A stretch of DNA of 64,000 bases, taken from Macrostomum hystrix. Lineage: Eukaryota; Animalia; Platyhelminthes. The stretch is taken from assembly GCA_950097015.1 (NCBI GenBank), contig CATNEN010000024.1:4030001-4094000 (forward strand). The letters run 5' to 3'. How positions within the stretch are numbered: the first letter of the stretch is position 1; every line of letters begins with the position of its first letter. Positions 537 to 64,000 of this stretch are shown piece by piece. The notes under the pieces are model-generated. The model ran no database searches, was not told the origin of the DNA, and saw nothing but the letters and a program-made list of their open reading frames with translations. The position numbers and the translations under genes were made by a program.

Positions 537-5766
<5,230 letters not shown>

Positions 5767-14487: not shown

Positions 14488-14838
14488 TGCTGACGATTTG
14501 GGATCTGACAATTCGGGATCTGACGATTCGGGATCTGACGATTCGGGATCTGACGATTCGGGATCTGACGATTCGGGATCTGACGATTCGGGATCTGACG
14601 ATTCGGGATCTGACGATTCGGGATCTGACGATTCGGGATCTGACGATTCGGGATCTGACGATTCGGGATCTGACGATTCGGGATCTGACGATTCGGGATC
14701 TGACGATTCGGGATCTGACGATTCGGGATCTGACGATTCGGGATCTGACGATTCGGGATCTGACGATTCGGGATCTGACGATTCGGGATCTGACGATTCG
14801 GGATCTGACGATTCGGGATCTGACGATTCGGGATCTGA
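14488..14838. repeat. Near-perfect 15-bp minisatellite just after the ASCL stop codon
   Basis: Unit gacgattcgggatct, about 23 copies. Confidence 0.97.
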
Positions 14839-16904: not shown

Positions 16905-17725
16905 ATTACTATCCTTCAGTAGCATCCTTCAGACCTTCCTTCAGTACTAACCTTCAGTAGCATCCTTCAGACCTTCAGTACTATCCTTCAGTAGCATCCT
17001 TCAGACCTTCAGTACTATCCTTCAGTAGCATCCTTCAGACCTTCAGTACTATCCTTCAGTAGCATCCTTCAGACCTTCAGTACTATCCTTCAGTAGCATC
17101 CTTCAGACCTTCAGTACTATCCTTCAGTAGCATCCTTCAGACCTTCAGTACTATCCTTCAGTAGCATCCTTCAGACCTTCAGTACTATCCTTCAGTAGCA
17201 TCCTTCAGACCTTCAGTACTATCCTTCAGTATTATACTGAATCTTCAGTATAATTCTTCAGTATAATCTTCAGTATAATCTTCAGTATAATCATCCTTCA
17301 GTAAATTCTGCTATAAGAGGTTGTAGCCTAGTGGTTAGGGCATTGGACTCACGACTTGAAGGTCAGGGGTTCGATTCCCGACCCCACTGGAACAATTTGT
17401 GTCCTTTAGCAAGACACTTAACTCTGCATTGCTTCAGTTCACCCAGCTGTTAAATGGGTACCAGCATCAGCTGGGATAATTGAAGATGGGTGTGGCGTCC
17501 CCCCAGTCCATGGACTGAACAGCTGTACGCAGTCTTCAGATGCGCTGCGCATTAGCTGCGGCTGTGCTGTCGGCTGCACATCTGACCCAATTAGGGCAGG
17601 TGTAATCAATTATTATTATTAATTATTCAGTATTATCCTTGAGTACTATCCTTCAGTACTATCCTTCAGTACTATCCTTCAGACCTTCAGTGGCATCCTT
17701 CATACCTTCAGTACTATCCTTCAGC
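16905..17725. repeat. 34-bp minisatellite interrupted by a SINE
   Basis: Unit ccttcagtactatccttcagtagcatccttcaga (period 34), present on both sides of 17318-17627. Confidence 0.9.
17318..17627 (+). mobile_element. tRNA-derived CORE-SINE
   Basis: A box tagcctagtgg (17324) and B box ggttcgattcc (17368), then tgtgtcctttagcaagacacttaactctgcattgcttcagttcacccagctgttaaatggg (17398-17458), which resembles the MIR/CORE consensus. Ends in an (ATT)n tail. Confidence 0.8.
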
Positions 17726-25400: not shown

Positions 25401-28400
25401 CACTTATATCCCACAGTTCAGTGGGGATCCCCACACGCACACACATGCTCACACTTATATCCCACAGTTCAGTGGGGATCCCCACACGCACACACATGCT
25501 CACACTTATATCCCACAGTTCCGTGGGGAATTGGAAAGCTGAATTTGCGTTTTTCCCAATCACTTAGCTGTTTTGAGCTGCCTTGGGAATTAATCCTATT
25601 TGGGATTTTGCTTAAGTCTCCGCAAGACACGAAGAAGCGACTGGGAAGCAAAAAAGCTTTCGGAAACAAATTTCCAGAATAACTGGGATAAACCTGTTAG
25701 ATGCTTTCATTTTGGTTTTATAATATCTCCACCCGTTGCTATGACAACGGACACCTAAAACACCAACTGGCAGTGAGTTCAGCTAGCCCGGCGCATTTGT
25801 ATCGATTCCACTAACCACCCGGCTTCGGTTTTTGGGGAAAAGTCTCCCACTTCATCTTCCACATGGGAAGGCTCAGACTCATTCTCTGTAGCAGCAGCAG
25901 CAGCAGCCGCAGCAGCAGCAGCAGCTACAAGTCAGCCCAGCCAGTCCACCCCAACCCCACTCTCGTCTTCAGTCCACAGTCTGAAATCCACCTTGTTTAA
26001 CAACTGCGAAGCGTGCACTATTCTAATGCTAGAGCATGCAGTGGCCTCACTAAAGGAGGCAAACAGTTGGAAACAGATACATAGTTTATTTCTGACCGCA
26101 ATCTACGGCCAGTATTTCAGATTTTTTGTAGCGAGCTTCTCTTAAAGCCAATTCAAATTTCAGTTGGAAGCATTATGTAACGGTATTGTCACTTTAAAAA
26201 GAATAGCTCTTGGACATATACTTGCGATAAAAAGCGTGATAGCAGCAGCGTGATTGTCAGGGAAGTTAAAGTCCAGTTCCGGCACCCATTCCTCAGAGAA
26301 AATCTGAAAAAAATTGAGGAATGAGGAACTGGCAGAGCCACGCCTCAATTTCCGGTCTCCTAGGTTTTGGGAGTACAATCTGATTGATCCCATCAGACAT
26401 GTTTGGACGCAGCGTTCCTTCTGCCCCTAGAGCAGTGTGTGAGGCTTTTTGTTTGCTTTAATGGGAATATTAAAAGTGTACAAATACAAATACAGATTGG
26501 CTGAATCTAGTTTTAATCCGATTGGTTGGATCTTAGCCTCTTCTGATTGGCTGAATCTAGTTTTAATCCGATTGATTTAATCTTAGCCTCTTCTTATTGG
26601 CTAGATCTAGGTTTAATCTGATTGGTTATATATTAGCTTCTGATTGGCTGAATCTAGTTTTAATCCGATTGGTTGGATCTTAGCCTCTTCTGATTGGCTG
26701 GATCTAGGTTTAATCTGATTAGTCTTTTTTCTTGTTTCTTTCTTTTCTTTTTTCTTGTTTCATTAGGCTGGAGTGTTTTTTCGAAGATTCAATGTGTCAG
26801 TGATCTAGGCGAATCGCTTTTTGCATCTTCGGCAATCGATGCCAAAGTTGTACATCTTGTTAATATCTGTATTTCCTGCAGCGCTACGAAGTGACATTCT
26901 CCATGCTGGAGATCTACAACGAAAATGTGCGCGACCTCCTTGGCGACGCGTCAGCGAAAACTGGCCTGCCAATCAGGCAGCACCCCAGCCAGGGTTTCTA
27001 CGTTCACGGTTTGAAACGGGTGCCAGTTGGCAGCTACAGGGAGATTGAGCAGCGTATGGAGCAGGGAACTGCCAACAGGACCGTGGCGGCTACCAACATG
27101 AATGCCACTAGCTCTCGCGCGCACACTGTTGTCACCATCGTCTTCGACCAGATCGCTGGCGGCGGCGGCGCTGGCAGCGGCGGCGAGACCAAAAAGAGCA
27201 GCGTCATGAACCTGGTTGATTTGGCCGGTAACTTCTGATTACCCATCCTAATGAGGAACGATTCCGATTCCCGAATTCCGATTCCCGAATTCCGATTCCC
27301 GAATTCCGATTCCCGAATTCCGATTCCCGAATTCCGATTCCCGAATTCCGATTCCCGAATTCCGATTCCCGAATTCCGATTCCCGAATTCCGATTCCCGA
27401 ATTCCGATTCCCGAATTCCGATTCCCGAATTCCGATTCCCGAATTCCGATTCCCGAATTCCGATTCCCGAATTCCGATTCCCGAATTCCGATTCCCGAAT
27501 TCCGATTCCCGAATTTCGATTCCCGAATTCCGATTCCCGAATTCCGATTCCCGAATTCTGATTCCCGAATTCCGATTCCCGAATTCCGATTCCCGAATTC
27601 CGATTCCCGAATTCCGATTCGCGAATTCCGATTCCCGAATTCCGATTCCCGAATTCCGATTCCCGAATTCCGATTCCCGAATTCTGATTCCCGAATTCCG
27701 ATTCCCGAATTCCGATTCCCGAATTCCGATTCCCGAATTCCGATTCCCGAATTCCAGGCTCAGAGCGGGCTGACAGCACGGGAGCAACTGGTGACAGGTT
27801 GAAAGAGGGCGCCAACATCAACAAATCCCTATCAGCACTTGGCAACGTAATCTCTGCACTTGCCGACCTGTCTATGGGCAAGAAGAAAGTGCTGGTCCCC
27901 TACAGGGACTCAGTGCTCACCAAACTGCTGCAAAATGCTCTCGGTGGAAACAGGTTACTCAGGAACAATATTCTGGACTACTACTTCGCAATCTTACATA
28001 CTGATAGTAGTACATAGCGGATTTTTGTACTTCATTTGCAATATTTTAGCAAAACGGTGATGATAGCCGCTCTATCACCGGCCGACATTAACTATGACGA
28101 AACCCTGAGCACTTTGCGCTATGCAGATCGAGCAAAGAAGATAAAAAACCAGGCCGTTGTCAATGAGAACCCCATGGACAAGCTGCTCAGAGAGCTACAG
28201 GTGAGTTTCCTTATACACCAGGTCCCAGCACTGCCTGTGAATGCCACTGCGAAATGCATGAGAATCGCATGATGGGATACATGCGAATCTCACTGATGAT
28301 ATGCATGAGAATCTCACTGATGATATGCATGAGAATCTCACTGATGATATGCATGAGAATCTCACTGATGATATGCATGAGAATCTCACTGATGATATGC

Positions 28401-42900: not shown

Positions 42901-44726
42901 CATTGTAACCACAAGGCTACAAGTTCCTACAACCTCTTCTGTAAAATCTGTACTACAAGTAAATAGATCTTGAATGCAAATTCTAGCTGATATTTATTCA
43001 GACAAATTTCTAGGCAAGTGCCAATAAGTAATTAAAACTTAGAAAATGCATTAACAAAAAGTTCAAATCTCACTCTTCCAGTTCCATTTCTTTTAAGGTC
43101 TTAAATCGCAATGTTAGCTAACATACTAAATTGCTCTGCCTCCATAGTGTGGATCATGCTAAGTGCACACAAGAAACAACCCAAAGCTAATCCCCAAAAG
43201 CGCGCCAACGACAAGCGAATGTACGCTGATGCACATTGATACATGCCTACTAGGACAAGGACTACTAACCACAGGTAACAACAAATAACAAAACTTAAAA
43301 CACCCTAACCATAACTAACCATATCAAATAACCATAACCACTACTAAAACTGTAATAATAGAAATTAGTTAGGCCTAATCAATTTAATTTAGTTGGCATC
43401 CTAATTCTCCAGGTCGGACTTGGACTGAAGGCCAACAAAGCTGCAAAACCACGACCGCAAGGCTTTCCGGCTGTCGATGACTTTGCTGGTGTCATATTTT
43501 TATGATAAAATGATATTTATTACCATAGGCCTATATTACGATATTTACAATTAAATGATAAATTCAAATTCAAATTGAAAGACAAAAAACATATTTTAAT
43601 GTTGCATTGTGTAAAACAAAGCAACAAACGATGTACTAAAGAAATGATATATCTTTAAAAACATGTATTTCTCATAAATTAATTTATTTAACAGTCTAAT
43701 ACACTGTTTATATACAATAGTTTTCAAAGTTAAATACAATAATATGTATTTTATGTCTGCTTACCAATGCATTGGCAGCATTGCTACATCAGGTGCCAGG
43801 CACGTGGCATGCGGTGCATGCCAGGCACGCCAGTGTATTTATGTAGTGTGCATTATGCATGCCAATTGCAAGCCACTTACCTAATCGCATGCCAGTGCAC
43901 ACCACTTTTGAAAATGCATGTGGGAAAATTCTCGCGTGCACTACATGATCTACACTATGGCTCTGCCTATAGTCTATTGGCCTTTCCTCAGAACATAATC
44001 AGAATATTTTATTACTTATTCTTACTTTTCATTTACAAGCCACAGCCCTGATTCTCAACTCATGACTTGTGCCAATTTTCCCCACATAAAATTAAATATT
44101 TAATATTTGAGCTAGGCCTATCAGCATTCTAGTTCCAATTTAGGCCAAATATTATGTTAGGTTAAAAAAATTATTTGAATTACATACAAGTAGCTAGTTT
44201 GTTTATAAGCTTATTTTAATGTTGTGGCTACTAATTTTGTCTTTTCTTTGGTAGCCAAATACTTTCTATACAGGTTAGTCTTTGTTTTAATTAGTAGGTA
44301 TTTAAAAAATAAAAAATATTGAATAATATATTTAATAATATGTAGCTAAGGCCTAAGGTTATTTTCTCTGTGTGTGACTTATATGGCTTATCATTAAAAA
44401 TAAGGCTTTTTAAGTACCATTAAGAACTACCATCTTTATGGCAAAAGTACTGTGAAAATATCATAATTCTGTTTTTTAAGTGGTTTCATGATGAAGCATT
44501 CAGGTGTGAAACTTGAGGTATAACTATTACTACTGTCGTTTACTTAACACTATGCTCCTCCTTCAAGATAAGGATCTCCATTAAATTTTACAACAATGCT
44601 TGCACTCCAATAAAGCTGAAGTATGTGAATATGTCTGACCTGTAATTGAAACTCTGCAGCTAATTGGTACACACCTAACTACACGGACAGTTGTTATACT
44701 AAGAGGGTTCATTCCAAACAATCTGA

Positions 44727-50000: not shown

Positions 50001-53000
50001 ACTTCCAACAAGTTATCAGCCAGTGACATTTGACCACCAACAATTTGACAGCCAGTGACATTTCACTTCCAACAAGTTAACAGCCATTGACATTTCACTT
50101 CCAACAATTTGACAGGCAGTGACGTTTGACTTCGAACAATTCGACAGCCAGTGGCATTTCACTTCCAACAATTTGACAGCCAGTGACATTTCACTTCCAA
50201 CAATTTGACAGCCAGTGACATTTCACTTCGAACAATTCGACAGCCAGTGACATATGACTGCCTGTAAACTAGCCTCAGCTATATTATTTTGTCAGCAGTT
50301 AAATTTTCAACAGTTTAATTGTCAGCAGTCACATTGTCTGCAGTCAAATTGTCTGCAAAATATTTATAAGCAAATGGCATATGCTATTTACATATTTAAG
50401 CAAAACATTGCAGTTAAATTTACGAAATAAGAGCTTACTACTAATGCGTTTTAAAAAATGAACCAATAATCTGTTTTTAAATACAATTAAAATCCAGATA
50501 ATGCACTACGTCGAGAAGCCAACAACCTTTGTGAGCACTATGATCAACTGCGGAATTTACATACTCAGCCCTAGCATCTTTCAATACCTCAAGTCAGCTG
50601 TTAAGGCACACAAGGATGCTCATTATAAGTGAGCTATAATAAGTTTGATCAATGACCCCTTATTTTGATTAAAATCCCCTCAGTTTGATCAATATTACTC
50701 AGTTTGATTAAAGGCAGTGCTTATCCCCACGGTACCGTAGAAATAATTTTTGTCTTATTCCTACGGTACCTTGGGAATAATTTCCTGCTTATCCGCACGG
50801 CACACTGACGAGATAAATAGATAAGATAGATAAATTATTCCGTGGGAATAATTTACTTGTTTACTTGCTTTTAAAAACCGGAAGAAAAAAGGAAAATTGC
50901 AGTCATGATAAAAAGATAGATGATAGGACAGCTATCTCGTCAGTGTGCCGTGCGGATAAGCAGGAAATTATTCCCACGGTACCGTAGGAATAAGACAAAA
51001 ATTAGTTCTACGGTACCGTGGGGATAAGCACTGCCTTGATTAAAATCCCTTTAGTTATTCAAAATCCCTCAGTTTTATTAAAATCCCTTCAGTTGATCAA
51101 AAGTTGAACTGCTATTCAAAAGCTTATTTATCACTTAGCATCATCTCTCCACAGTTTCGACTTGTCCTCGCAGTGCAACGAATGCGTTCAAATGGAGCAG
51201 GACGTATTTCAACCCTTGGCTAGTCGCAACTGTCTGTTCGCGTATGTCACTAACCGATTCTGGAGTCAGGTCAAATCAGCCGGGTGAGTTGCAATAAATT
51301 TTTACTAGGCCTTGACACAATAGAGAATAAATTAACAAGAGGAGGGTAGGCGAGCGACTCGCAGACATATAGGTAGTGGCAGACTACAAAGAATCGATAT
51401 ATAGGTAGTGGCAGACTACAAAGAATCGATATATAGGTAGTGGCAGACTACAAAGAATCGATATATAGGTAGTGGCAGACTACAAAGAATCGATATATAG
51501 GTAGTGGCAGACTACAAAGAATCGATTCTCACCTGGCCGATACTCACTTAATAAGAATGGCAGGCTACAAAGACTCAGTAGATGTAGCAGACTACAAAGA
51601 CTCAGTAGATGTAGCAGACTACAAAGACTCAGTAGATGTAGCAGACTACAAAGACTCAGTAGATGTAGCAGACTACAAAGACTCAGTAGATGTAGCAGAC
51701 TACAAAGACTCAGTAGATGTAGCAGACTACAAAGACTCAGTAGATGTAGCAGACTACAAAGACTCAGTAGATGTAGCAGACTACAAAGACTCAGTAGATG
51801 TAGCAGACTACAAAGACTCAGTAGATGTAGCAGACTACAAAGACTCAGTAGATGTAGCAGACTACAAAGACTCAGTAGATGTAGCAGACTACAAAGACTC
51901 AGTAGATGTATCAGACTACAAAGACTCAGTAGATGTAGCAGACTACAAAAACTCAGTAGATGTAGCAGACTACAAAAACTCAGTAGATGTAGAAGACTAC
52001 AAAGACTCAGTTGACAGGAGTATTCTGTTGCCTTTAAGGGCTCAATAGATAAGGATTAGCAAGCTACAAAGACTAAATAGATAGGGATTGGCAGGCTACA
52101 AAAACTCAATAGATATGGAGTGGCATATTATTCTGTTGCCTACAATGACTCCAGCGCGGCCATCTACGCCAATCGCCACATGCTGGAACTGTATCGTGCC
52201 AGCCATCCGGACCGCCTGGCAGTCGCCTCCGCTCCGACAGCCGGCCCGAAAATTATCGGCAATGTCTATATTCATCCGACGGCCACTGTTAGTCCAGGCG
52301 CCGTACTAGGCCCCAACGTGTCAGTTGAACGCTTTGTAACCATTGGCAACGGGGCGCGAGTGCGCGAATCAATTCTGTTGCAGGGCGCTGTGGTTAGGGA
52401 TCACGCCTGCGTACTATTCTCAGTTGTTGGCTCTAATGCCACAGTCGGCGAATGGACTAGAGTTGAAGGCACGCCAACTGATCCGAATCCGGATAAGCCA
52501 TTTGCCAAGATTGAGACTAAAGAGCTGTTTAACGAGACGGGACAGCTGAACCCATCCTGCACTGTCATTGGTTAGTGCATTCTCTGATACTGATACTTGC
52601 TAGGACCGGGAGATACTGCGGCTTGTCTCTTATTAGGGAAAAAATGATCCGCCGCAATATCTAGGAGTCAATTCCGCTCACTGAGCAGTGACTCCTGAGC
52701 ACCCACCCATGAAATATAAAAAACTGCACTTTTAAGGAAAATTTTCACTAAGCAGGATTTATGATAATCCTCATTTTAATAAATCATTTTTATAATTATA
52801 GAAATCAGAAATAACTTGTACATACTCCAGGCAGTATTGGCGACTATTTCATAAAATAGTTGCGTTGTTAAATGGTATACAAATAGACCACGCTATTTTC
52901 CATCTGGGAAAAGACAACTAGGGTATTTCAAATACCCACTGCCTACTTCAGGATAGCTCCCAAACCAGAATGACCGATTTTGGTGAAAGTCCACTTTTTG

Positions 53001-54340: not shown

Positions 54341-54678
54341 ATAATAATAATAGTTGCAGGAGGGCTGTGGGCAGTGGCACATCATTTGGTGACAGTAGAC
54401 CTGCAGCCAGCGAGGAGGCAATATTGCCCATTTCTAGCACACACGCACACAGATACCGTTCGCAGGCACACACACAGGTGTGTACATCTGCCCTGACTTA
54501 CTCATCGTCATGCAGTGTACACTCTCGTACTGTGCCTTGAAGACTGGCCCTTAAGGGCGTAAATTGCTTGACAAACCCACAAGCCTTCTCTCCGCATGGC
54601 CTCACCGCGTAATCAAGCTCAAGACCTTCGTGCGAGAGTAAAACGTGTTAGACGGCTGTGCTACTCACCCTCCGCCCC
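54341..54678 (-). mobile_element. SINE family 2, copy 3
   Basis: (ATA)n, then the body shared with 30882 and 39686. The degenerate tRNA-like head ends at about 54678. Confidence 0.75.
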
Positions 54679-54725
54679 AATGCGTTGGCTACTATTTATA
54701 TCTACATACTGACAAAATATTGCAG

Positions 54726-56135
54726 GATTTGCTAATAACTGTGCAACCCGATTGGCCATTGTCCTTGGCCGATGAGGCTCCAATCTGGATCAACGTGCGC
54801 CGTCGCTGTCAAAACAATAGCAGCAGCGGCAGCAACAGCGGCATAGCCTGCCGCAAGTATCGAGCTCAGATTAGCACTCTCCGTCAGCCGACGACAGTTT
54901 CTGAAGTGACAGCCGAGCCTGTAGCCTCGCCGAACAGCGCATCCCAGGATGAGATCGCACAGCTGACGCTCAGCCTGCCGCAGCCCCGGCTGCTTCGCGT
55001 TCGTTGCACCTTCGCCGGCGAAGCTGTTGTCCATTTGGCGGCCTTCCAGTCGCCGCAGGCCACGCTGGACGGCCTGCACGCTGGCAAAGCTGTAAACAGC
55101 GTCGACGTCACTCCCGGCGGCATCGGCGTCTCTAGCGACAAGACTGGCCGGCTTCTCGTCTGGGACACGGCCACCGGCGAGATCCGACGTCGGCTAGAAG
55201 GCCACACTGGCGACGTCTACACCTGCCGCTTCTTCCCCTCTGGTATTGTTGCCATGAGCGGCGGCGCCGACTGCCGCATCCGCATCTGGGCCTGCGACAC
55301 GGGCAACTGCGCCGCTGTCATGGTCGGGCACCTCGGCGGAGTTGCAGCCCTCACACCGGTGGATCGCGGCCGGAATCTGGTGTCCGCAGGCCGTGACGGC
55401 GTACTTCGCCTGTGGGACGTCGGCCAGCAGCGATGCCTGGCCGTCTACGGCGAGGCTGCGAATCCCCCGGATCCCATCAACTGTCTGTGCCTATTGACGC
55501 CCTCAAGTAGTCTGATTGCGGCTGCGGAGGCGGCTGTGGAAACAGCGTCTGTCCGGCCTGCCGCTGTCTCCACGGATCGGGAGGTCGGCACTGCCGGCAA
55601 GGCGGTCCTAGTTGGACACGAATCCGGCCGGCTGGTCTGCCACAGTCTGGCTGGCCGGCGCTCTCAAATCTGGTCCATCCACTTACCGGCCGCCGTCAAC
55701 TTTGCCTGCCCGGCGCCTGACAGCCCTGCTACAGCAGCTGTCGGCTGCTCCGATGGCCGCCTACTGATTGTCCGATTTGACGGACCGAGATTGCCACCAA
55801 CTTCGCTTGATGCCGACTGTTGCGCTGAAAACGGCGACAACATTGAGGGAAATAGTAGCAGTATTGATCGCCTTCGACAGCAGCTGCTAATGCTGGGCCC
55901 CCTGCTGTGCGGCAGCTTCTTGCGCCAGCCCGACCGGCTGGTTGTCGGCACCCAGAATGGCGTCTGCGCCTTGCTCAAATTGTCGCCGCTTGGTGACACT
56001 GCCTCGGCACCCGCTATTGAGACACTGCTAATGCTCACCGGGTCAGACTGTGATCCTATCTACTGTCTGGCTTGGGATGCCGGCCACCTGTACACCGGCT
56101 GCAGGGATGGCCGAGTTCGCAAATATAGCTGCTGA
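54726..56135 (+). CDS. PAAF1: Proteasomal ATPase-associated factor 1 (WD40 protein); start codon not encoded in this exon
   Basis: The open frame follows a 3' splice site (tactgac...ttgcag|GAT). The N-terminal ITVQPDW segment resembles IQSDW of PAAF1. WD repeats: LEGHTGDVYTCRFFPSGIVAMSGGADCRIRIW and GHLGGVAALTPVDRGRNLVSAGRDGVLRLWD. Also DREVGTAGK, and the C-terminal LTGSDCDPIY...YTGCRDGRVRKY. Confidence 0.88.
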   Translation, partial: DLLITVQPDWPLSLADEAPIWINVRRRCQNNSSSGSNSGIACRKYRAQISTLRQPTTVSEVTAEPVASPNSASQDEIAQLTLSLPQPRLLRVRCTFAGEAVVHLAAFQSPQATLDGLHAGKAVNSVDVTPGGIGVSSDKTGRLLVWDTATGEIRRRLEGHTGDVYTCRFFPSGIVAMSGGADCRIRIWACDTGNCAAVMVGHLGGVAALTPVDRGRNLVSAGRDGVLRLWDVGQQRCLAVYGEAANPPDPINCLCLLTPSSSLIAAAEAAVETASVRPAAVSTDREVGTAGKAVLVGHESGRLVCHSLAGRRSQIWSIHLPAAVNFACPAPDSPATAAVGCSDGRLLIVRFDGPRLPPTSLDADCCAENGDNIEGNSSSIDRLRQQLLMLGPLLCGSFLRQPDRLVVGTQNGVCALLKLSPLGDTASAPAIETLLMLTGSDCDPIYCLAWDAGHLYTGCRDGRVRKYSC

Positions 56136-56922
56136 CTGCTAAATTCTGAATTCTCTTAGAAAAAAAAGCAACTGAAATAGTTTAAAGCGCTCGTATTGCC
56201 ATAATCGCATTTCCTTTTTTCCTAGTAGGCATCCTGTTGCCTTACTTCTTTGGACACCTGTAAATCTTTATTTACCAGTGATTTTCGCAAATAAACAAGA
56301 TGCGCAACAATTTATTGACGGAACCGATCATTTTAAAACGATAATAAAGGTCGTCTAGATAAGAACAAAAGGTCGTCAGTGAACACCGAAGTCGGAGATG
56401 ATGCAGGCACATTCGGGTGATATGCTGATAAAGTCGCAGTTTGAATTGGTGCATATGGGTGTATGAAATGCACTAGCGCTTATGGGAAAAATTCTACCTT
56501 CGACCAGAACCGATGAATATCTCGACGGTCTGAAGGGCTGCCCACTTGATTCTTGTTTCAGAAGATGCGCAACAAAAAGTTGGCCCGTGTTCTTGAGTTT
56601 CGTGTGCTTGCGTTGCTCCGTTCGGGTACATCTGTTAAACTTGTTAAATTGCTTTTACGCATGTTTTGTGTAAATTATTGAGCACACCGACTGGCTGTAG
56701 AAGACAAAATATGATTGGCTGGGCCAGAATTGGCGATGAGGCTGTCAAAACTCTGGCGAAGACGTAGGTGGATCGATAGGCGATCGATAAATAAACGTGG
56801 GGAGAATGTGCAGGGCTAGACCAGACTGATCGATAATACTCGTAGATTAATCGATAATGCGTGAATCCATAATGGCAGACAATAGGGGAGCTAGAGAACG
56901 AAGGGCGCACAGAGAATACGAT

Positions 56923-59578
56923 GGTTTACTCCCGATTCGCTGATTCGCCGAATTCCCGATTCGCCGAAATTCCTGACTCGCCGAATTCCCGATTCGCCGA
57001 AATCCCTGACTCGCCGAATTCCCGATTTGCCGAAATTCCTGACTCGAATCCTGATTCAATACATCTTACTTTATCATAAATTAAAATTAAACCACATAAC
57101 CATTGCCCTCTTTGAGTGTTGGTCAAATATTGGAACTCTATTTCTATTGTATTGAAGTTAATTAAAAAACTAACTTAAATGAAATGTAGGATTCATACAT
57201 CGATTCATACATAATGGTGCCATAGACCATTTAAGCACAAAAAATCGATGTATGAGTTGCATTGTATTACGTTGGCTTACTACTTTAGATGGCGCGTTAG
57301 ATGCACGCTCAGTTAGACTTTGTCTTAACCATAGACAAAATGCGTGAAAGGCACGCAAGTTGATTGAGTGTTACGAAGAAGGGAATAAGAAGCTGTTAAA
57401 TTAAAATCACTTGTGAGAGAATATGGCTGAGCCACCAACTAAAGTCAGACTTCTGAATCTGAGCAAATTTCCGAACGAAATGATTTCCGGCTTGTCCACC
57501 AATGAGATTGACGACATCCTGAACGAGCCTGATAATCTACAGGAGTCGGCGATTGATCGAGAAGAGGAGGATCTTCTGGAGGCACTTTTCAAGAAGATAC
57601 CTGACGAAGAAGCTGAACTACTTGAATTGGAACAGCTCGTTTCCGAAATCGAGGACACCGCTGCTAGTAAGAGTGTGACAAAGGCTACCGAATATTATGT
57701 CGGTAAGTTGCAGAGCTTCATGGAGAACCATCCGTCAGTTCAGCGTGATTTGGCGACTTCTACACCGCGCGAGATCGATAGTCTATTGCGATGCTTCTAT
57801 GGCTCACTTCGCAAGAGGAATGGCGAATACTTTGCTCCAGCCACGTTGATTTGCATCCGAGCTGCGCTCTACCGGCATTTCATGTCGACAAGGCGAATCA
57901 ATATTCTAACTGACGACGCATTCTATGCTTCCAATACGACACTGAAGTCAATGGGCAGAATCTTCATTGCCCGAGGCGGACGCGCCCGACACTTTCAATC
58001 GATCGAGCCTGTTGATCTGAAGAGGCTGTCTGACTACTTCGATCGGAAATCTCCAGAGGTGCTACTTCATGAAGTGTACTACAACATTATTTTCTACTTT
58101 GGAAACAGAGGTCGCGAGTGAATCCGTTCACTGAGCGATGATTCCTTTCGATTCGAGACGGATTCCGATGGGATTGAAGTGTTGCTGGAACAGTAAAGAA
58201 TGTTGGCAAAGAACTCTCCAGGAACTCGTGTGACGATGTCAAGCAAGCTGTTATGAGTGCGTTGCCAGACAGAAGCCGCTGCCCTGTGGAAGCTATGAAG
58301 CTCTATTTAGCTCAGCGTGAGCAATCCATTCCATCAAGCAGTTCGGAGACGGTGAAAAGATATCCTTTCTTCTTACTGCCGAAAAAGACTGGTTGGGCAA
58401 ATGGAGCATGGTACTGCCCGAACAAGGCAATTGGTGTGAATCCCTTGGGCCAGCTGATGACCGTCATTTCAAAGAAGGCGAATTTATCAAAGTCATACAC
58501 TGCGCACTGCATTCGATCCACGGTAATAAAGGAGCTATCTAACGCAGGTTACAGTGTGTCTGATATCTGCAAAGTGACTGGCCATAAGCAGACGCGAACT
58601 GTAGAACGCTACTTACGCTTTGGCTCCAGAAGGGATGGTGAAATGCGAGACATGTCGGTCAGCTTGGCTTCTGCACTACACAAGGATGATTCCATGCAAG
58701 ACGTGATTATGAAAGACTCTTCTACCGTCATGAGCCAGTCACTGATTATTTCTGACACGTCGGACGTTGCTGGTGGGACGCCAAGTGATGACGCCAAGAA
58801 GAAGCCAACTGTGGTTTACAACTTCTACAACACTGTCAACAACTGCACGTTCAATTCTTAGAGTGAGTAATAGCAATGAACTTTTCCCATACTGAACTTC
58901 CAAATGCAGAACGCCTTCATCTTCATTCGCTTTCCCTGTCTGTGCACCTGCTAACCGTTCCTGTTACTGTAACTGTAATCGGGATTTACAAAAGCCTGTG
59001 TAGGGACCGAAAGGACGGGGTGTCCACGATGTGAATACACAATAAGCGATGTAAAGCATTTTCGATGACTTAAAATGGAAATCACTTGGGTCAGGCGTCT
59101 ACACAGTCTACCTTGTTTACACAATTCCATGTTGTTCGTTCGTTGTACTTGTAGCAGAAGTATACTTATTAAAATATACTCACTTTCCGTGCATTACACG
59201 CGTTAGACGCACGCTTGTTGTTTTTACTCAGATAGAAAATTGCCATAGACAACTACATTAGACGCACAGTAAATCGTGCATCTAACACGCGCCAGCGTGA
59301 TACAATGCACTTTCTTTATTCATTAACTTGTAAACTTGCTTCTAAACTTTATTAACTTAGATTGAGTGAGCAAAGAAGAACATCACACGTACTTCGGAAA
59401 AAGCAAAACTTGCTGGACATCCTTCGGGAAATTCGCCGAAATTCGGGAAATTCGGCGAATCGGGAATTTCGGCGAATCGGGAATTTCGGCGAATCGGCGA
59501 ATCGGGATTCGGCGAATCGGGAATTTCGGCGAATCGGGAATCGGTGAATCGGGAATTTCGGCGAATCGGGAGTAAACC
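56923..59578. mobile_element. 2,656-bp TIR DNA transposon with a 9-bp TSD (Mutator/Foldback-like ends) containing a tyrosine recombinase gene
   Basis: Both ends read GGTTTACTCCCGATTCGC (18 bp identical), followed by inverted arrays of ttcccgattcgccgaa (56930-57050 and 59420-59570). GAATACGAT sits immediately outside both ends (56914-22 and 59579-87). Confidence 0.88.
57423..58861 (+). pseudogene. Crypton-type (CryptonA/DUF3504-like) tyrosine recombinase interrupted by an in-frame TGA and a 1-nt frameshift
   Basis: ORF 57423-58121 has LRKRNGEYFAPATL..IRAALYRH and FGNRGRE (catalytic R). The reading continues past TGA 58119 as IRSLSDDSFRFETDSDGIE, then shifts at about 58179 into the frame of 58253-58861: CPV, YTAHCIRST (HxxR), VTGHK (H) and VERY (Y). 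Confidence 0.8.
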
Positions 59579-60070
59579 GAATACGATACGCTGATTGATA
59601 CTCGTACAATTGGGGATAAACACTTTCCGCGACAGTGTAAAAGCCTATAGGGCTATCTTTAAGACTGCGACGTGAATATTTCCAGATAAAATGCATTTTG
59701 TTTTTTGAAGTGTACTTAAGTTTGGTTAGCACAGCTTTAATTGTTTTGTTTTTTGAGATATTTTGCTCGAGGCATCTGAAAAAACGCGAGAGAAGACTGC
59801 AGACGGCATCGTTACAGTGCATGGTTATTCTTTTTACGTCTCTGCCTCTGCCTTTACAGAAGCTGCAGAACCCTTTGGGCGCTTTCCTGAGGCACTCCAC
59901 TTACACAGGCAGCATTCATTTGTTGAGAATTCATCTGACTAGTTTACGCAGGAAAATTGCTGCTTTCGAGTGGTATATACTCGTATATTAAATGGCGAAC
60001 GTTAAATACAAAAAAGTACTTCTCTTTCACGCCACTCATATCTTACCGCTTTAGTTTCAAGCTACGGAAA

Positions 60071-60712
60071 ATGCTTGCAAGTTTTTTTGTCATATCTTTG
60101 GCGCTTCTAGCCTCGTCGGCATCATCGTCCGCTGTTGATTCGCAGGACGCGGATGCAGCCGAGCAGCCAGCGGTGGTCCGCATGTCGATGCTGGTGCCCG
60201 CTGAGAAGATCTCTAATCGCCCTCTGGCCAGCCGCTTGCTTGGCTTCTCCTGGTCGGACTGCGGCCCGCCAGACAGCTGGGTGAAGATTCACTACCTTAG
60301 ATTGCAGCCAGATTACATCAAACTGGGCGGCACTGTTGTTATCAATGCTGCTTTCAACATTACAACTAGCTTTGGCGACACCCAGCCGCTCGAAGGTTCT
60401 GTGGAAATGCAGGTCAAATCGATTTTCGGATGGATAAAGTTGCCATGCATTAACAACATTGGTTCCTGTAGCTATGGCAATTTGTGCACTAGCCCGCCGC
60501 CGCCAAGCACTTGTCCGACAGCGTTTATTAAGGCCGGCATTCCTTGCAAGTGTCCATTTACGGCTGGCAACTATACTCTGACAGACTACGCCTTCACTGT
60601 TGACGGCTCTAAGTTTCCTGACGTGCTAAAAGGAGACTTTAAGGTGACCATGAATTTGAGGGTCGGAGGAAGGCAAATCTTCTGCATCAACTCTGAACTG
60701 TCCGTCAACTAG
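60071..60712 (+). CDS. GM2A: GM2 ganglioside activator-like ML-domain lipid-binding protein, secreted
   Basis: ATG at 60071 followed by a hydrophobic signal peptide. FSWSDCG, FGWIKLPCINNIGSCSYGNLC and CPTAFIKAGIPCKCPF give the GM2AP cysteine pattern. Confidence 0.88.
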   Translation: MLASFFVISLALLASSASSSAVDSQDADAAEQPAVVRMSMLVPAEKISNRPLASRLLGFSWSDCGPPDSWVKIHYLRLQPDYIKLGGTVVINAAFNITTSFGDTQPLEGSVEMQVKSIFGWIKLPCINNIGSCSYGNLCTSPPPPSTCPTAFIKAGIPCKCPFTAGNYTLTDYAFTVDGSKFPDVLKGDFKVTMNLRVGGRQIFCINSELSVN

Positions 60713-63655: not shown

Positions 63656-64000
63656 TCAGCGGCTGTTATTTGGCGCCGACTTGCTTCGCTTAGCATCCGG
63701 GGTGCCGTCAGCGGCGGCGGCAGCTGCCAGGGCCTGATCTAAATCAGCCAGCAGCTCTTCTACATCTTCCAGACCGACAGACAGTCTAACGAACGAATCG
63801 GTGATGCCCAGCTCGGCTCGCTGCTCCGGCGGTACAGAGGCGTGCGTCATTATTGACGGCACTTCAGCAAGAGACTCGAAGCCGCCGAGCGATTCGGCCA
63901 GCGTGAAAACCCGCAACGCGGAGACAAACACGGAGGCGTCGACGCGCAGATAGGCGGACACCATGCCGGAGTAGCCGCGCTGCTGACGCTTGGCCAGCTG
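63656..64000 (-). CDS. CTH: Cystathionine gamma-lyase, 3' end (5' part outside the window)
   Basis: QLAKRQQRGYSGMVS...FTLAESLGGFESLAEVPSIMTHASVPPEQRAELGITDSFVRLSVGLEDVEELLADLDQAL, then TGA. This is the C-terminus of the Cys/Met metabolism PLP-dependent family. Confidence 0.92.
   Translation of the reverse strand, partial: QLAKRQQRGYSGMVSAYLRVDASVFVSALRVFTLAESLGGFESLAEVPSIMTHASVPPEQRAELGITDSFVRLSVGLEDVEELLADLDQALAAAAAADGTPDAKRSKSAPNNSR

Follow-up and report, generated by a model that had tools for sequence, protein, structure and literature searches.

Tyrosine recombinase (YR) elements and elements moved by DDE transposases leave different marks at their insertion sites. Fungal and oomycete Cryptons carry a terminal direct repeat matching the target (PMC3212892), and Cryptons are bounded by a 4-6-bp microhomology repeat (PMC3212892, PMC13465315); in the 2011 survey of Kojima & Jurka, animal Cryptons were found without terminal repeats (PMC3212892). 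In Aedes aegypti, the non-autonomous Foldback-type MULEs derived from Muta1 have 8-9-bp TSDs, terminal inverted repeats (TIRs) of >100 bp and subterminal repeats (PMC5225508). Both worlds meet in MarCry-1_FO, a Mariner-Crypton composite of Fusarium oxysporum in which a DDE-type element, with its TIRs and TSD, encloses a Crypton YR; the composite encodes its own DDE transposase and is present in four copies that are >97% identical (PMC3212892).

Here, we analyzed a 64,000-nucleotide stretch of Macrostomum hystrix DNA (hereafter the window), in which a YR gene is likewise enclosed by TIRs and a TSD of DDE type. Compared with MarCry-1_FO, however, the composite is known from one copy, lacks a transposase and contains a broken YR. 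The analysis led to the conclusion that two independent elements, a 2.1-kb Crypton nested in a 535-bp non-coding TIR element, very probably account for the locus. As the Crypton was inserted inside the TIR element, the outer ends and the YR belong to different elements.

Outer TIR element

The features of the locus are collected in Table 1. The 18-bp TIRs, the inverted subterminal arrays and the perfect 9-bp direct repeat GAATACGAT, which lies directly against both TIRs, were all recovered as given in the preliminary description. With up to three mismatches allowed, the 18-mer matched only its two terminal positions across the window, and no match was obtained in 100 shuffles. Beyond the perfect 18 bp, an imperfect inverted match runs on to ~120-137 bp, across arrays that are built of 16-17-bp units and lie in opposite orientation. 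Without the inner Crypton and one AATG, the two outer parts add up to a symmetric, non-coding element of 535 bp (264 + 271 bp), in which TIR and array on either side frame an AT-rich non-coding interior. No transposase coding content was found inside it, and no empty 535-bp element turned up elsewhere in the window, in metagenome contigs or in 112 kb of DNA from M. lignano.

Table 1 Features of the composite element and its neighbourhood in the window.
Feature	Position	Strand	Remarks
PAAF1	54645-56135		neighbour of the composite
TSD of outer element, left copy	56914-56922	.	identical to 59579-59587
Outer non-autonomous TIR element, left part	56923-57186	.	TIR, array and AT-rich interior as far as the AATG target
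Subterminal array, left	from TIR (56923-56940) to ~57046		16-17-bp units
Inner Crypton-type YR element	57183-59307	+	2125 bp including both AATG cores; M. lignano similarity ends there
AATG core, left Crypton junction	57183-57186	+	same position in L001, L006, L009, L010, L012
Left-end hairpin remnant of Crypton	57193-57255	.	arms 57193-57205 and 57243-57255; tip found in L001 deleted here
Imperfect inverted copy of Crypton right end	57260-57306	.	just inside the hairpin; pairs with ~59273-59307; L009 alike
YR pseudogene, first piece	57423-58121	+	232 aa; QRICH1-like domain; catalytic Arg 58107; ends at premature TGA
YR pseudogene, last piece	58190-58861	+	shifted frame; K, HxxR, H, Y; Phage_integrase, weak DUF3504
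CCATAGAC motif	59243-59250	+	starts 65 bp inside the Crypton right end; further copies at 57220 and 57329
AATG core, right Crypton end	59304-59307	+	
Outer TIR element, right part	59308-59578	.	AT-rich interior, array 59423-59571, TIR 59561-59578
TSD of outer element, right copy	59579-59587	.	
ML-domain gene (GM2 activator / NPC2-like)	59957-60712		also delimited as ~60071-60712; apparently intronless

The outer element was first described as having MULE/Foldback ends, and this assignment probably holds. Its TSD of 9 bp lies within the 8-10 bp typical of MULE/Foldback elements, as judged from a single copy, and its repetitive TIRs exceed 100 bp when the imperfect extension is counted and carry short subterminal tandem repeats. 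The arrangement resembles the Foldback MULEs of Aedes in its 9-bp TSD, in the short terminal motif followed by inverted subterminal arrays and in the non-coding interior, but differs from them in the length of the repeat unit (16-17 bp compared with 9-15 bp in Aedes), and neither an autonomous partner nor a sequence link to a MULE transposase was found. The class is nevertheless not firm, because the GG...CC termini combined with a 9-bp TSD fit Merlin as well (terminal GG with an 8-9-bp TSD; PMC8101967). With its terminal 5'-GG-3', 9-bp TSD and internal tandem repeats, the outer element is indeed similar to Merlin / IS1016 non-autonomous elements; however, its perfect TIR of 18 bp, though extended imperfectly, falls short of the 24-462 bp described for them (PMC8101967), and no link to a Merlin transposase was found. 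We regard Merlin as the less likely of the two classes, though a tenable one.

Two minisatellites elsewhere in the window (14490-14838 and 27261-27755) consist of GATTC-rich units like the outer subterminal repeat, the second matching it at 76% over 139 bp. Both are plain intronic arrays, 27261-27755 forming a small intron in an apparent kinesin motor coding region. They were rejected as members of the outer family, being without a matching TIR or TSD.

Inner Crypton and free copies in Macrostomum lignano

Database searches were carried out with the two YR pieces. The first piece was 99% identical to the M. lignano protein P0001; another member of its cluster, P0002, pointed to contig NIVC01001456.1 (L001). 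Positions 2571-3618 of this contig hold an internally deleted copy of the Crypton, with 97.4% identity to 57221-58066 and 94% to 59177-59308 of the window. The similarity starts at ~57183 and ends at 59307-59308, the flanks beyond are unrelated, and no outer TIR, array or TSD was found in the flanks of the L001 copy. Its internal deletion (3484-3487, corresponding to 58063-58066 / 59177-59180 of the window) joins two TACT words, as in a microhomology-type deletion.

An inverted copy of the L001 flank serves as an empty-site paralogue: 47 of 47 bases are identical, and a single AATG occupies the insertion point. As the empty site has one AATG, integration of the Crypton leaves AATG at both element ends, and the copy at 57183-57186 is probably the target's own. 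AATG was present at both ends in six of seven Crypton copies from three families, the seventh having ATTG on the left and AATG on the right. The rule is thus kept by a sister family and one more distant element, apart from the single left-hand ATTG. The sister family comprises four dispersed M. lignano copies (L004, L009, L010, L012) with a mutual identity of 97-99.6%, and its proteins are 35% identical to the query relative. One of its copies, L012, is internally deleted, as L001 is with respect to the window Crypton. A bracket of TIR and 8-10-bp TSD within 700 bp was absent from all five free Crypton copies tested, while the same test recovers the outer element of the window. The four dispersed copies of the sister family show that elements of this kind are independently mobile. 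L001, the sole close free copy of the window Crypton, belongs to a different species and carries an internal deletion.

The inner element accordingly displays the features by which a Crypton is recognized: a 4-bp terminal direct repeat that matches the target and is not a true TSD, as in fungal and oomycete Cryptons; a YR with R-(K)-HxxR-H-Y as its sole gene, without RT or DDE, although a stop and a frameshift disrupt this gene; and dispersed copies that share the same boundaries in different flanks (the window and L001, and the four sister-family copies). In its one intronless YR gene, without RT or DDE, it corresponds to animal Cryptons (CryptonA / DUF3504-type), as do its YR and the relatives of this YR in combining QRICH1-like, DUF3504 and integrase domains. 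Internally deleted derivatives (L001, L012) are a further trait shared with Cryptons. Unlike the animal Cryptons of 2011, the element has defined ends, consisting of the AATG core, a left-end hairpin and, further inside, a copy of the right end in inverted orientation; the window copy is a pseudogene.

The position of the GTCTATGG motif, the hairpin and the boundaries were checked directly at 57183-59307. The left-end hairpin, whose tip is deleted in the window, reached a z of -4.3 there, compared with -10.9 in L001 and -8.8 in L009. In sister families, the tip reads GCGAAGC (left ends of L004, L009 and L010; L006 at ~575-590), while in L001 (2581-2677) it reads GCGCTGC, or GCGCAGC on the other strand, as though the tip had been inverted. 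From these sequences, a flip/flop of the hairpin tip appears possible. The inverted copy of the right end (57260-57276 against 59291-59307, with an equivalent in L009) includes the complement of AATG and gives both families a lox-like layout. The inverted repeat 57258-57276 / 59291-59309 was also considered as a TIR of the Crypton and was rejected, as the similarity to L001 reaches further left, to 57183.

Decay of the tyrosine recombinase gene

Alignment with intact relatives, for which the two pieces were read through with X at each break, assigned the YR residues R (58107), K (58196), H-x-x-R (58505, 58514), H (58583) and Y (58610). The order R, HxxR, H and Y in the preliminary description is thereby borne out. 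The gene, however, is broken, a point missed in that description: an in-frame TGA at 58119-58121 follows just past the catalytic Arg, where relatives carry Trp, and a frameshift lies near 58185-58196. Owing to these two lesions, the catalytic residues are split over two reading frames. The YR is a pseudogene, and judging by its reading frames the enzyme cannot be made from the copy at 57183-59307. Pfam matches were obtained to QRICH1, Phage_integrase and, weakly, DUF3504. For DUF3504, the window pieces remain below the cut-off, whereas intact relatives exceed it (P0005, 45.2 bits; P0006, 31.8 bits; P0158, 35.6 bits). No other coding content, neither RT nor DDE, was found between the outer TIRs, in agreement with the preliminary description, in which the YR was likewise the sole gene.

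In a quick tree built from the same read-through, which contained no labelled CryptonA/I/V references, the window YR fell among its relatives, its closest neighbours being a DUF3504 protein from M. lignano and Logan proteins without a name. A search of metagenome contigs with a YR piece gave no confirmed relative. The closest other relative, L003 (SRR31628425 contig; 60-66% identical), is also interrupted just past the catalytic Arg motif, in this case by a deletion, and the similar point of interruption in L003 and the window is probably a coincidence.

Host neighbourhood and possible transfer between species

The best match of the neighbouring PAAF1 was found in M. lignano (64% identity), and the gene order nucleotidyltransferase, PAAF1, cystathionine-lyase-type gene is common to the window and the M. 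lignano locus L011. The composite is absent at this orthologous locus, the sequence of which is too diverged to serve as an empty site. The ML-domain gene sits between PAAF1 and the cystathionine-lyase-type gene in the window; no matching sequence was seen in L011 11317-12928, and the gene may represent a lineage-specific gain or loss.

Comparison of four-fold degenerate sites revealed a marked difference between the Crypton and these host genes. Only 2 of 96 sites differ between the window Crypton (57221-58066) and the M. lignano copy (L001 2643-3487), whereas in three host genes (window 52148-52576, 54720-56133 and 63732-64000 compared with L011) 93/176, 40/71 and 17/51 sites differ, giving 150/298 in total and a range of 33-56% (Crypton versus host genes, Fisher p ~3e-21). 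The coding DNA of the Crypton is ~98% identical to the L001 copy, and its 5' non-coding part 95%. As such near-identity cannot be put down to selection acting on the protein, recent horizontal transfer or introgression is likely. The sequences of this one copy pair thus suggest that the Crypton may have moved recently between Macrostomum species by either route. Four other repeats of the window (17319-17621, 43142-43960, 50712-50982 and 56432-56626) have 82-91% identity to M. lignano loci, above that of host synonymous sites, and may represent either additional cases of exchange or conserved elements.

Origin of the composite and alternative explanations

Two sets of ends, two target signatures, an inner element that occurs free and the decay of the window copy together argue for nesting. 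The outer element would have been inserted by a putative DDE transposase acting in trans, most likely of Mutator/Foldback type and possibly Merlin, whose 9-bp staggered cut would have produced the TSD. The Crypton would have integrated at an AATG in the AT-rich interior of the outer element, leaving AATG at both Crypton ends; following the Goodwin model as it is cited in PMC3212892, it may have been excised as a circle and re-integrated by its own YR. After integration, the window Crypton would have decayed, acquiring the stop codon and the frameshift and losing the hairpin tip. The YR did not contribute to the formation of the 9-bp TSD. The Crypton could have arrived before or after the last jump of the outer element, as either order fits. 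In the former case, sister copies of the composite might exist, as is known for MarCry-1_FO (PMC3212892).

Such sister copies are at the heart of the best-placed alternative, according to which a single nesting was followed by Pack-MULE-like copying of the 2.66-kb composite to several places by a DDE transposase, giving a small family with a dead or live YR gene as its passenger. We consider this improbable. The perfect state of the TIRs and TSD next to a decayed inner element is in its favour, non-autonomous MULEs with heterogeneous interiors still move (PMC5225508), and MarCry-1_FO provides a precedent for a Crypton composite mobilized by a DDE enzyme (PMC3212892). The perfect outer ends are nevertheless no proof of a later jump, because 27 perfect positions are not unusual at ~1-3% divergence. 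The YR is broken, and no second composite of outer ends and Crypton was seen in the window, in 112 kb of M. lignano DNA or in metagenome contigs.

A hybrid family, in which the outer TIRs would be substrates of the YR itself and the 9-bp duplications its products, was suggested by the YR being the sole coding content between TIRs and TSD. This chimeric reading, raised in the preliminary description, has largely been refuted by the L001 copy and is now very improbable. The same YR element, 97% identical, exists in M. lignano NIVC01001456.1 without the outer ends, with its own AATG-bounded ends and an empty site; the YR is thus evidently neither restricted to the space between these TIRs nor devoid of boundaries of its own. 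Occurrence of the YR elsewhere with its own boundaries had been named beforehand as the observation, on the YR side, that would speak against a hybrid family. In addition, the YR gene in the window is broken, and YR chemistry yields microhomology repeats rather than staggered-cut TSDs (PMC13465315). Of the options listed at the outset, the nesting of a Crypton within a non-autonomous MULE proved essentially right, with the YR residing in the separately bounded element. That the outer TIR and TSD are a product of chance or rearrangement without any transposed element, for which the similar intronic minisatellites might be cited, is hardly credible, given that an exact 9-bp direct repeat (alone expected by chance at ~4e-6) abuts an exact 18-bp inverted repeat and that the outer 11 bp of this TIR fall outside the array unit.

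Implications

Nested transposons are routine, and Cryptons and Foldback/Merlin-type elements are both known kinds. With two nested elements, the locus becomes ordinary and the apparent paradox of a YR with a 9-bp TSD disappears. A more far-reaching scenario, which we rate as a long shot, is that the composite became mobile after nesting, so that the Crypton would be multi-copy cargo with 9-bp TSDs, spread by a DDE enzyme, and that this carriage aided the recent crossing between Macrostomum species. If true, such a cargo family would parallel MarCry or Pack-MULE in an animal. For the Crypton itself, the ends of an animal representative are now defined to the base, together with its 4-bp AATG core and a corresponding empty site, and excision and integration assays can consequently be designed.
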